Below, in pieces: positions 30,001-36,000 of a stretch of 64,000 bases of DNA. Origin of the DNA: Octopus sinensis. Taxonomy: Eukaryota. The position numbers and the translations under genes were made by a program. The notes below the pieces were generated by a model, which saw nothing but the letters and a program-made list of their open reading frames with translations, had not been told where the DNA came from and made no database searches. Every line of letters starts with the position of its first letter. The first letter of the stretch is position 1. Location of the stretch: assembly GCF_006345805.1 (NCBI RefSeq), contig NC_043001.1, positions 74,028,001 through 74,092,000 on the forward strand. The letters are read 5' to 3'.

Positions 30001-33000
30001 TTTTTACATTTTCTTTTTTTTTTCCCCACTCCCCTTTTATTTGATATCTCCAACCTACCAAGTTTCAAGATATCCAATACCAAAATGATTTTCTCTTTCT
30101 AGAGTAGAAACTTCATTTTAAAACAATTAAAAGAAAAAATACAAGATAATTTTAAAAGCTAGCTATTAGATTAACGAAGCAGTTAAACCAACCATTCATC
30201 TAATTTCTTGAAATTATTGGACTTGATTTTTGTCTTTCATGGTCTTGTGTTGAAAAACCAAGTACCAGCTATATACTGGACTTAAGTAGATATTGAATCA
30301 GACACATCCCCTCATACTTTATAAATTTGTGGCTCTTAATGTAAAAATTCATTTATTGAAGTAGCTCTCTCTCTCTCTCCTCTCTCTCTCTCTCTCCATC
30401 CCTCCCTCTCTCTCTCTCCACCCCCCTCTCCATTGTATATTTTCTGTTAACATTGAACAGGGGAGGGAAGACCACACCTCTTTGTCGAACACCTGTCCTG
30501 ATAGTGAACTCCTTAAAGAGGTTGTTTCAGATCTGGACCAGGCTAGTTGAATCAGCATAGGCCAAACGTAGGAGCACAATGAATCTTTTGAGACACTTGT
30601 TCGGTTTCCAACAATCTCCATAGGGTAGTCCAGTTGACACAGTTGAAGGCAGACTTGAAGTTGATGAATACACCCACAGCGTATTTGTTCTTCCATCATT
30701 TTACTGCCACTGGCATGGTTTGAACATGTCACAGATTATCACCATCCAAGTAATATCTTATTAGGATCATGCTTGTATGTGTCATTTGGCTTAGTTTCTA
30801 TAACTAGATGGCCTTTCACATTGCCAAATGTGCTGCAGGTAAGTAACGGAAAGACCCTCTTCGGTCATGAATGAGCACGGGATTGTACCTAGACAGTAAC
30901 CCTCCGAGGCACAAGTCCAGGCAAGGTTGCCCATGCATATTAGTCTCCCCTCTCCATGTCACTGATGTTATCCAAGGAAAAGGCAAAGGACATTACAGCT
31001 TGGAACCAGTGATGTTGCAACTCATTTTTACAGCTGAGTGAACTGGAGCAACATGAAATAAATTGTCATGCTCAAGAATGCAACACACAACCTGGGTGGG
31101 GACTGGGTGCATTCTCTCATGGCATTGACATAAGACAGGTTGTATAGTCCTGGTCAAGGCAGGACTGAAAGGACCTAAACTAACAACTCAATACTTTCTC
31201 TGAACATTTACCAATGACATTACAGTGTGTAATTCTTTATGGCACCACTACTAGAAACAGTCTGTCACTCACCAATCTCTTTAAAGGGGATACAGCAGAT
31301 AGATACAATTCCAGCATGACACTGGTACAGAGTAAGTTGTAATACAGTACATGTTGATCTATCCGTGCCTGCTATTTTTGGTTTTCATGGATGGTTGTTT
31401 GATGAGATCATTAACCTTCCTTCAACCATCATCATTTTTTTTTTTTTGGAGACAAGGGACTCTGTTTGCACTCCCTAATGACCCTCACACAGTGTTGTAT
31501 AGCTGAGAGGAGAACAGAGAGAGGAGGTTTTATACAGTACTTGATTGGTACTTTCTTTATCAACCCCAGTAGAATGGAGAGTAAAGTCATCCTCAGCAAG
31601 ACTTAAACTGAGAATGGCATTACTATATACTATTTAATTAATACTATTTAGACATGCATTACATTATGGACAGTTATCATTAGTAGTCCATGGAGCAGTG
31701 GTGAGGAGGTACAGTTACCAACTGGATTTTCATTTGTTGTGACTATCTAGTTAATTTACTGAAGAACTCTTGTATCAAAAGAATATTTCAAACTTGATAG
31801 ATCTGACATAAAATGAAGAGCATTTTATTGTTAATATACAAACAAATCAGATTCTGAGATTCCCAGCTGAAGTTGAAATTCATTGGTAGACATCTGTTGA
31901 CTTTCTTACCTCCACTTTAGACTATGCTATTCAACAGCTTAGTTCTTAAATTGAAATTTAGCCATCAAATTTAAATTCACTTATGTAATCATTTATTTAG
32001 ATATTAAGTGTTTAGTTATCAGTACCTGACCAATTAGTTAATAGTTTCTCATTATTTCTGTTATAAAACTTATCTGCCACATCTCTCCCACTCTAGTATG
32101 TGTTGTCCCAAATCTAAATCCTCATTGCTTTTTATATCAGCCTTTTCAATTTCCTTTATGCTAATTGATAATTGATATCTGCTTAATAGCTATTCCCTTA
32201 TCAAACTATATTTTAGCCTTGCTTAGTAGCTATTCCCTTATCAAACTGTATTTTAGTTATTTTTGCTTAATGCAAACAAAATTAACTTCCTTTGGTGTGG
32301 CTTAATTAAAAAATAAATAGAAAGCATATGAAGAGTTCTTAGTTAACTGTTTCTCAATAGTGAATATGTATTCTGGATATATTTAGAGGCCCCCTAACAG
32401 CAAATAAATACAGTTGTCCAGTAATAGCCTATACTCCTGATATAGTAAACCATCCCTTAAACACAAATATGTATATATATATATATATACATATATATAT
32501 ATATTCCTGATATATTAAACTGTCTCTTAGCTAATATATACTCCTGATATATTAAACTCTCAAATAAATGCAATGATATACTTCCAATATATTAAACTTT
32601 TCCTTAATTGCAAATATATACTTCTGATACTATCCTCAATTATCCTCAACAACAATTTTTTTACTTTTGGTATATTCAATTTTGTTGTTGTTGTTGTTCA
32701 ACAGTTAGTAATTTTGTTAATTATCTTTTATCATTTTAGCAATTAATTCTGTTTTCATCTTGAGGAGCCAATAATTCTAACTTAACCAACCTTCTTACTA
32801 ACACAATCTTGTAAACTTAAAGAAAACTAAGTCAGACGGTATAATACTTCGTTAATTATTGTTATTTCATTTAGCATAATGGCCAGTATTATTACATTAA
32901 CTATTGGGACCTTTAGGTGTTATTAATACTAGGGGCTTAGTATAAGGGTAAGAAATAGCAAGCTGTTGTTCATCAGCAGAATATAACACACATTTACCAA

Positions 33001-36000
33001 CAGGAGGACAGCACTATCACTTGCAATGGTTACTCTTTCATATAAATTCTATTACTATTTCAACCTTGGCCTCTTTTGAGCAAATTGATCTTGTCTTGCC
33101 CCCTCAGAGAAGCTGCGCCAGAATGAGGAACTTGTCCGAAAAATGCTGAAGGACCGAGAAAAAATAATTGCTGAATTACTCAACATTCCCTTCGATGATT
33201 ATGATCATATTGTTGAGGTAAATTGTCTTTCAACATACCTAATCATTTTTATCCTTTTTTCATATTTCCCCAGTCCCTATCTGATATCCGTCACTTGTTC
33301 CAGTACAACAGTCATGACTCTACATTCAAATATAACACCAACAAGAACCCAATACTGGGAATTATTAAATCTGTATTAGCATCTGTTAATTATGTAGAAA
33401 TGATATTTTCTTTATGATGATATTAACTGGACGCTGAATTAGTTCCTGCAGACACTTCTCTGTAGAAGTATGTTGCACTGATCTATCAGTCCAAAAGTTA
33501 TAGCATCTTGTGTCTTGTATCATACCTAGATGTGTGTATGTGTGTATAATGTATGTGTATACATGTGTGTATTGTATATATGTATATATGTGAATGTATT
33601 TGTATATATATATATATATATATATATTCCTGATATATTAAACTGTCTCTTAGCTAATATATACTCCTGATATATTAAACTCTCAAATAAATGCAATGAT
33701 ATACTTCCAATATATTAAACTTTTCCTTAATTGCAAATATATACTTCTGATACTATCCTCAATTATCCTCAACAACAATTTTTTTACTTTTGGTATATTC
33801 AATTTTGTTGTTGTTGTTGTTGTTGTTCAACAGTTAGTAATTTTGTTAAATTATCTTTTATCATTTTAGCAATTAATTCTGTTTTCATCTTGAGGAGCCA
33901 ATAATTCTAACTTAACCAACCTTCTTACTAACACAATCTTGTAAACTTAAAGAAAACTAAGTCAGACGGTATAATACTTCGTTAATTATTGTTATTTCAT
34001 TTAGCATAATGGCCAGTATTATTACATTAACTATTGGGACCTTTAGGTGTTATTAATACTAGGGGCTTAGTATAAGGGTAAGAAATAGCAAGCTGTTGTT
34101 CATCAGCAGAATATAACACACATTTACCAACAGGAGGACAGCACTATCACTTGCAATGGTTACTCTTTCATATAAATTCTATTACTATTTCAACCTTGGC
34201 CTCTTTTGAGCAAATTGATCTTGTCTTGCCCCCTCAGAGAAGCTGCGCCAGAATGAGGAACTTGTCCGAAAAATGCTGAAGGACCGAGAAAAAATAATTG
34301 CTGAATTACTCAACATTCCCTTCGATGATTATGATCATATTGTTGAGGTAAATTGTCTTTCAACATACCTAATCATTTTTATCCTTTTTTCATATTTCCC
34401 CAGTCCCTATCTGATATCCGTCACTTGTTCCAGTACAACAGTCATGACTCTACATTCAAATATAACACCAACAAGAACCCAATACTGGGAATTATTAAAT
34501 CTGTATTAGCATCTGTTAATTATGTAGAAATGATATTTTCTTTATGATGATATTAACTGGACGCTGAATTAGTTCCTGCAGACACTTCTCTGTAGAAGTA
34601 TGTTGCACTGATCTATCAGTCCAAAAGTTATAGCATCTTGTGTCTTGTATCATACCTAGATGTGTGTATGTGTGTATAATGTATGTGTATACATGTGTGT
34701 ATTGTATATATGTATATATGTGAATGTATTTGTATATATATATATATATATATATATATATATATATGTTTGTATGTGTGTATGTATATATTGTAAAGTT
34801 AATGTTGACTGTGACCTACACCATACTTAATTGAGTGACTTTCATCAAATAAGTGTTCCTTTGTATGAGATATATGCGACAGAAATTTCTGTTGGAGTAG
34901 TGACCATTAGAATATCTGTAGAAAAGCAGAGTAAGGAGTCATCATGTTTCTGCAAGTGACTTTGTGCCAATGTGTCAAGTGGTCTTTTCCAACATGTAGC
35001 TTAGGATGGCTGTGTGTATGCAACAGTTGTACCATCCAATATGTGAGAGCAATACTCTATTGCAGACCTCATCTGAGTTCTGCAGAGGGTCACTAATTGT
35101 CAGTGACTGAGGTATCTTCTGACCTTATAGAGAAAGATGGGCTGTTGGGATGAAGTTTCTCATTGATTGCTTGCTCATAATTGATAAGGAGTTTAGTGCA
35201 ATGGTGTTTTCTTGATGTAAGTAGTGTTTATATTTTCTTGTTGCTGAATGAGGCAGTATTTGCATATCTCTTCTGGAGGATGCTGTTCTGATCCCTGCCC
35301 ATGAATTAATAAGGGTTTGGCATGTAGTGCCTAGTTTGAGAGTGAATAATGTATAGTTGAGGAATGTTAGTGAATTGTGAATGTTAATGTCTTCTGTGTA
35401 GGAGTGGGCATTGTTGCTGGATGTGGCAGTAAGTCAGTCATTGATGTATAAAAAGAAGAGTAGGGCACTCTGGAGTTGATAGGTGAGGACTTTGTTAACA
35501 CACATATGGTAATAGGGCATTTTGATCGGAAGCTATCAATTCAAGAGATGAATGGAGCCCATAGTCAGGAAATTTCACGAAGTGATTCACATGCCAGATA
35601 GGGACAAAAGTATACTGATGTTGATGGCAATGACATTGCTTTTACCAAATTCCTCTGGGACAAAAGCCAACTGATGAGTGACAGAGGAGAGTGGATCATC
35701 TTAGATTTTGCCTTACAGAAACCATATTGAAAGTCACCAAGGAGAGAGAATGAGAGATCCGTGGTGTTGTTAATAACTGCCATCATTGCCTTAGAGATAT
35801 TAGAAGTGACAATGATAGGGCAATAGTTGGGAACATCAGGAAAATGGCTTTTCTTGGAAATTGAACACATTAGTGTGTTTTCAAAGATCAATACACACAC
35901 TCACACACACACAAATGGCTGGGTGGTTAAGTAGTTTGCTTCTCAACAACAGTTTCAGATTCTACTCTCTGTGTGACACTTTGTATTACAGCCCCAGGAT

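Follow-up and report, generated by a model that had tools for sequence, protein, structure and literature searches.

One exon laid down twice: a probable assembly duplication in an ARHGEF1/11/12-type RhoGEF gene of Octopus sinensis

What should one make of a coding exon that turns up twice, letter for letter, in the same gene? The question is raised by a 64,000-nucleotide stretch of the Octopus sinensis genome (assembly GCF_006345805.1, contig NC_043001.1, positions 74,028,001 to 74,092,000 of the forward strand; 'the window' below, in whose own numbering all positions are given), where a 110-nt exon of a RhoGEF gene lies in both halves of a tandem duplication. The original prediction had seen in these exons a possible newborn pair of mutually exclusive exons, or a switch coupled to nonsense-mediated decay (NMD), and had cautioned that an assembly artefact might look the same. 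The caution was in place, and the internal evidence leans towards it: the second 1.13-kb unit is probably an assembly duplication, a 'false exon gain', and we infer that the second copy is absent from the genome, so that the animal's gene would have the exon once.

The facts of the structure are simple enough. The two units lie head to tail and align locally without a mismatch over 191+37+909 = 1137 nt (coordinates are collected in Table 1), and a repeat of such length and identity cannot have arisen by chance. The original prediction had put the differences at the number of GTT triplets, (GTT)5 in one unit and (GTT)7 in the other, and one single-nucleotide indel; our alignment agrees, adding only the lengths of the bounding (TA)n microsatellites, so that the units differ by indels in (GTT)n, an A run and (TA)n and by no substitution at all, with 909 nt as the longest stretch free of any difference. 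A 37-40-nt minisatellite (TATACTCCTGATATATTAAAC...) occupies 32367-32620, spanning the left (TA)n tract, and recurs at 33623-33743; with at least one of its copies outside the duplicated unit and three inside, the left breakpoint falls within a tandem-repeat array. Were the duplication real, the absence of substitutions would place divergence between the copies below about 0.26% (95%), and its age might then be under roughly 4e5 generations at 3e-9 mutations per site per generation, a rate that is assumed and not measured in this animal group.

How does the duplication bear on the message? Both copies share a strong acceptor, cttgtcttgccccctcag/AG (ending ...ccctcag/, the slash marking the splice point), and the donor GAG/gtaaat, all U2-type GT-AG sites, and the intron that separates them is 1020 nt long. 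The identity, spacing and intact splice sites that had been described for a duplicated coiled-coil exon are thus all there; of the exon peptide a helix is confidently predicted (pLDDT 93 in a single-sequence prediction), a coiled coil being no more than possible. Upstream, the exon at 23110-23273 reads on in frame from the preceding exons 18869-18955 and 20913-21207 when translated. Conceptual splicing of 23273, the 110-nt exon and 40583 keeps the frame open when exactly one copy is spliced in. Inclusion of both stops translation 13 codons into copy 2, at the TGA that begins at 34277, and skipping of both gives ...SPIDGV followed by a TGA at 40591-40593, all as the frame logic of the original prediction had it. 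The copy-copy junction on double inclusion reads ...CATATTGTTGAG/AGAAGCTGCGCC..., and the junction of a copy with the downstream exon ...ATTGTTGAG/ATGGCGTCT.... The 3' end of that downstream exon is uncertain, with a donor after either 40784 or 40788. Joining the latter (phase 2) to an acceptor before 47955 leads to a stop; the former (GATA/gtaggt, phase 1) stays in frame with an acceptor before 47959 (tcag/TG), and it is possible that a small unseen exon lies between the 40.6-kb and 47.9-kb exons.

Could the two copies nevertheless be used in a mutually exclusive manner? They have some of the right attributes, being adjacent and equal in length, phase and splice-site class, and joint inclusion or joint skipping breaks the frame and so exposes the transcript to an NMD filter, a property shared with many known exclusive pairs (PMC6071210). 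However, exons must differ if they are to give two isoforms, and these are identical over 110 nt; nor did any of the three devices that might block joint inclusion come to light. Steric hindrance is excluded by the 1020-nt intron between the copies, and U2/U12 incompatibility by the same U2-type sites in both. A search for docking and selector sequences, in which the unit was compared with the rest of the 17-kb intron region with microsatellites masked, returned a longest complementarity of 13 nt, a length that 40% of dinucleotide shuffles also reach. Pairing is confined to the (UA)n tracts and to one tract of composition (TA)n(CATA)n at 23589-23673; the duplexes of left with junction and junction with right tract gain only about 2-4 kcal/mol over self-folding, before any loop penalty, and some 30 further (TA)n tracts of the window would be rival partners. 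The frame filter is the sole criterion of exclusivity acting here, and it discards wrong products without choosing a copy. The proposals of a newborn exclusive pair and of a regulated NMD switch are accordingly left without positive support.

What, then, would a cell do with both copies? Because they are identical, either choice gives the same mRNA and no isoform diversity arises; for the same reason the junctions 23273 to 33108 and 23273 to 34238 are indistinguishable in RNA sequencing (RNA-seq), the copy-copy junction is the only informative mature junction, and the copy of origin can be read only from intron-containing nascent reads that cover (GTT)5/7 or A2/A3. In a real duplication, splicing would by default be expected to take in both copies, with a frameshift as the outcome. 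The order of transcription would favour this, as the copy-2 acceptor emerges 1 kb past the copy-1 donor and the next exon 6.2 kb further on. Default double inclusion in turn means that a real duplication would lose the normal product instead of offering a regulated choice. There is a human precedent in the dystrophin gene DMD, where untreated cells with a single-exon duplication make mostly the double-inclusion transcript, show low single skipping and have no dystrophin (PMC1931584).

This brings us to the reading that we favour, in which the assembly, and not the animal, made the second copy. The segment lies between two (TA)n microsatellites, and it is in low-complexity tracts of this kind that the overlapping of reads and the filling of gaps can be trusted least; the assembly may have taken in the segment a second time and linked the copies by way of a (TA)n tract, after which polishing would have evened them out except at its weak points, short repeats and a base run. 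The gene would then yield one normal mRNA, with nothing to regulate. The copies are adjacent and near-identical, and differences made of indels alone are the residue expected from long-read consensus and polishing. The neighbourhood points the same way: redundant copies (two tandem pairs and a palindrome) make up about 4% of the window, a share that falls inside the published range for false duplication in assemblies (PMC8081667) and that, by our own estimate, exceeds by orders of magnitude the density at which real duplications of less than about 0.4% divergence should occur. Nearby direct repeats are also sharply bimodal, either 70-80% identical (dispersed, SINE-like, that is, resembling short interspersed nuclear elements) or at least 98.5% identical (the two tandem pairs), with nothing between, and a steady natural supply of duplications without rapid loss would leave older copies behind. 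Finally, the duplication breaks a conserved DH-PH (Dbl-homology and pleckstrin-homology) RhoGEF frame; selection removes such alleles and artefacts are blind to function, which favours an artefact, and in one study false duplications struck exons about as often as chance expects, 'false exon gain' being a recognised class (PMC9516828).

Several observations weigh against this conclusion. Not a single N occurs in the window, and the copies themselves adjoin without one, whereas published false duplications are usually separated by N gaps (PMC8081667, PMC9516828), although a gap in read depth, with no read support, is possible at the (TA)n junction. In published cases the homotype class typically has the length of about one read and the heterotype class that of a whole haplotig (PMC8081667); our 1.1-kb unit agrees poorly with either. 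Around it the sequence runs for 64 kb without a gap and resolves (TA)n tracts as long as 124 nt, which suggests long reads that would span the whole duplicated structure. Moreover, unequal exchange or slippage between (TA)n tracts in vivo predicts the same structure, the residual indels would also separate two real copies in a long-read assembly, and rapid loss of tandem duplications could explain why older copies are missing. The similar sizes of the units (1123-1140 and ~1112 nt) cannot be taken for a technical signature, as ~1-kb spacing of (TA)n tracts is common in the window, and we rejected them as such. The original prediction had also pointed to two concatenated haplotypes. This is an awkward fit, with no gap and 909 nt without a difference: heterozygosity in Octopus vulgaris is 1.22% (PMC10700109), from which about 14 differences would be expected in 1137 nt against the zero substitutions seen, and identity over 909 nt would collapse in a graph assembler. 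Haplotype concatenation suits only a low-heterozygosity genome or region, and we keep it as one possible route to an artefact.

If the assembly is right after all, the duplication would be a very young and probably harmful one, which arose in the living genome when two (TA)n tracts underwent unequal exchange or replication slipped from one to the other. We hold this to be plausible, though less likely than an artefact. It would probably be polymorphic, or heterozygous in the sequenced animal, and default double inclusion would leave either a degraded mRNA or a protein without its C-terminal ~270 residues, in other words a hypomorphic or null allele, whose normal mRNA would be at most a minor share, formed when a single copy happened to be skipped, much as DMD single-exon duplications, with their mainly double inclusion and lack of protein, behave (PMC1931584). 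Unequal exchange predicts that the two sides of the junction tract should match the opposite outer tracts, and so they do, the left side matching the right tract and the right side the left. Such tracts are dense (35 in 64 kb, at a median spacing of 0.7 kb), there is no gap, the unit is much shorter than long reads, so that most reads would span it, and a true allele-specific tandem duplication inside a contig has been documented (PMC9516828). Harmful alleles are, in addition, expected to be young, and the gene-breaking pair has no substitutions against four in the pair past the last coding exon seen. The price of this explanation is that it requires two independent and very young duplications of ~1.1 kb, as well as a perfect palindrome, in one 64-kb stretch that lacks older ones, and that the allele would damage a likely single-copy, conserved signalling gene. 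Nor did independent sequence of the locus turn up: exact look-ups of four open reading frames (ORFs) of the window, one of them crossing the junction, gave no match, and neither did exact scans for the exon core in metagenome contigs and prokaryote genome contigs.

Could a real duplication also be a functional one? In its most developed form this would make the locus a time-zero exclusive pair, or an NMD-coupled switch that tunes the amount of full-length RhoGEF, with some transcripts destroyed for carrying both copies and (UA)n pairing looping out one copy in others. The attraction is that 110 nt does not divide by 3, which leaves single inclusion as the one surviving outcome, and that the three (UA)n tracts and the tract at 23589-23673 are mutually complementary and can each have one partner at a time, a layout formally equal to the competing-structure model; Ivanov and Pervouchine have proposed that duplication of one arm of an intronic stem yields two selectors for one docking site (PMC6071210). 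Against it, the mRNA and protein are identical from either copy, which leaves selection no isoform choice to work on, none of the steric, U2/U12 or specific docking and selector mechanisms is present, and pairing between tracts gains little energy and would face many competitors. We therefore judge it very improbable. A shade better, though still a slim chance, is the proposal that a real time-zero (TA)n-to-(TA)n exchange doubled a frame-asymmetric exon together with flanking self-complementary (UA)n tracts. Were that true, the allele would have been born with an NMD filter and a crude layout for competing pairing, a natural start for an exclusive pair whose first evolutionary step could be tested directly.

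The matter is of consequence whichever way it falls. If the second unit is an artefact, gene predictors must drop one copy, or else the RhoGEF will be called in truncated or frameshifted form. The window also suggests that (TA)n-bounded false duplications of ~1 kb may be frequent in this assembly; if so, exon duplications and 'young' tandem repeats would be overcounted. If the unit is real, we would have a rare view of an exon duplication before divergence, and a direct test of whether identical tandem exons are used exclusively, as evolutionary models would have it, or jointly, as in disease alleles.

Table 1. Positions of the duplicated exon, its surroundings and other repeats in the 64,000-nt window.
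Feature	Position	Strand	Remarks
Tandem unit 1	32505-33627	+	1123 nt; ends in junction (TA)n tract
Tandem unit 2	33628-34767	+	1140 nt; ends in right (TA)n tract
Left (TA)n tract	32472-32504		33 nt, one CA interruption; left edge of unit 1
Junction (TA)n tract	33603-33627		25 nt; between units 1 and 2
Right (TA)n tract	34733-34767		35 nt; right end of unit 2
(GTT)5 in unit 1	32684-32698		counterpart in unit 2 is (GTT)7 at 33807-33827
A indel	32719-20 (unit 1, A2); 33848-50 (unit 2, A3)		21 nt past end of GTT run
Exon copy 1	33108-33217	+	110 nt; phase 1 in, phase 0 out
Exon copy 2	34238-34347	+	identical to copy 1 over 110 nt, splice sites identical
Upstream coding exon	23110-23273	+	leaves in phase 1 (one G carried over); donor ATTG/gtaaga
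Downstream coding exon	40583-40788	+	open only in phase 0; holds Q9 then FVDLQE
Premature TGA on double inclusion	34277-34279	+	68 nt upstream of copy-2 donor
Second tandem pair	53413-54524 / 54526-55642 (span 53396-55656)		~1.11-kb (~1112-nt) units
Palindrome	44957-45936		980 nt; two 489-nt arms, 100% complementary; 2-nt centre 45446-45447
Dispersed short element	756-1133, 11099-11320, 15562-15867, 17453-17605	+	related pseudo-ORFs
Dispersed short element	22031-22438, 48828-49064, 62374-62592	-	related pseudo-ORFs
Imperfect inverted repeats	27456-27675 / 27783-28000; 37195-37355 / 37398-37556; 8975-9234		

What kind of gene is it that carries the two copies? Plus-strand exons at 8.4-18.9 kb splice conceptually into a DH-PH module, and the original prediction of an RH-RhoGEF (a RhoGEF with an RGS-homology domain) agrees with what this module resembles. 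The DH domain matches Pfam RhoGEF (PF00621) with an E-value of 9.1e-33 in a conceptual splice of the exons at 8.4-15.6 kb, and the PH domain follows directly (PH_16, PF17838, E 6.6e-37; the 17-kb exon alone gives E 1.6e-21). Among solved structures the best matches of the DH-PH module are ARHGEF12, ARHGEF11 and ARHGEF1 (E 2.5e-82 to 1e-72), with ARHGEF12 (PDB 1txd) at E 2.5e-82 and AKAP13 far weaker at 2e-31. The nearest protein was a Lottia DH-PH fragment with 49% identity, in a search that returned only proteins shorter than 600 aa and, among those, none from cephalopods. An RGS-homology domain (PF09128), which some of the shorter homologues retrieved carry, gave no Pfam match in hand-picked plus-strand open segments of at least 40 aa from window positions 1-8450, chosen to omit repeat-like ones, a scan in which short exons can be missed; that domain probably lies upstream of the window, and no PDZ domain is found within it. 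The assignment to the RH-RhoGEFs, whose orthologues are RhoGEF2 in the fly and rhgf-1 in the worm, thus rests on the DH-PH subfamily signal, which supports an ARHGEF1/11/12-type RhoGEF by sequence similarity.

The C-terminal region, which ends at a stop codon at 49794 in the last coding exon seen, matches no Pfam family, and the conceptual C-terminal peptide found no match in protein searches. In LARG, the oligomerising coiled coil sits at the extreme C-terminus (PMC12799961), and by position an exon at ~47959-48190 is a better candidate for it than the duplicated exon. The stop on double inclusion precedes this candidate, in keeping with the earlier suggestion that a frameshift at the duplicated exon would remove the oligomerising region. 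We discarded the idea that the exon is conserved in vertebrate C-termini, where inspection by eye showed no more than a loosely similar helix. Past the PH domain, the linker contains a long low-complexity Thr/Ala-rich run, in exon 20913-21207, and the Q9 run at 40610-40640, both repeat-encoded and likely of variable length.

What else is repeated in the window? The second tandem pair lies ~3.6 kb past the stop codon of the last coding exon seen and, like the focal pair, is bounded by (TA)n at left, junction and right; its units differ by 4 substitutions and 7 small indels, and each holds an identical 75-aa ORF that is probably spurious. The palindrome belongs to the intron that separates the 40.6-kb exon from the 47.9-kb exon; its flanks are unique and no (TA)n tract borders it. 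It reflects either a fold-back duplication of very recent date or a chimeric long read that entered the consensus. The dispersed short element, whose pseudo-ORFs share ...WHGLD... and ...FLMPTTLQ... or ...FLMPTTP..., is probably a repeat of the SINE type, to which some of the self-matches of 70-80% identity are due. Imperfect inverted repeats, with arms of roughly 130-220 nt that are 81-88% complementary, look like hairpin elements of the miniature inverted-repeat transposable element (MITE) type, and are far more diverged than the perfect palindrome at 45 kb.

How, in the end, does the locus compare with systems that are better understood? Taking the gene first, its DH-PH module is closest to those of ARHGEF1 (p115), ARHGEF11 (PDZ-RhoGEF) and ARHGEF12 (LARG); the difference is that no RGS-homology or PDZ domain turned up in the window and that the C-terminal region here matches no family. 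Most known mutually exclusive pairs are ancient. They resemble the present exons in being adjacent, with equal lengths, phases and splice-site types and a length not divisible by 3, and exclusive exons derive from tandem exon duplication (Kondrashov and Koonin 2001, as cited in PMC6071210), but the known pairs diverge and give different proteins (Martinez-Gomez et al. 2021, PMC8373072), whereas these are 100% identical. Control by competing structures, as in Dscam, 14-3-3zeta and srp (PMC6071210), has its counterpart here in intron flanks that were duplicated along with the exon, so that the inside arms are doubled, although there is no specific outside arm beyond chance and only locus-unspecific (UA)n pairing is available. 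Duplications of DMD exons 44 or 45 (PMC1931584) have in common with it a tandem exon that is repeated without change and does not divide by 3, double inclusion that is out of frame and single-copy skipping that restores the normal mRNA, except that those duplications are proven in patients' DNA and RNA and ours is read from an assembly. The false exon gains of Rhie et al. (2021, PMC8081667) and Ko et al. (2022, PMC9516828) differ in having N gaps and units of read or haplotig length, in place of a gapless 1.1 kb, and their palindromes, a class that also figures among published false duplications, measure 7-17 kb against 0.98 kb here; yet they share with the octopus locus adjacent near-identical copies that include a whole coding exon, a junction in hard-to-assemble sequence and redundant structures nearby, a palindrome among them.

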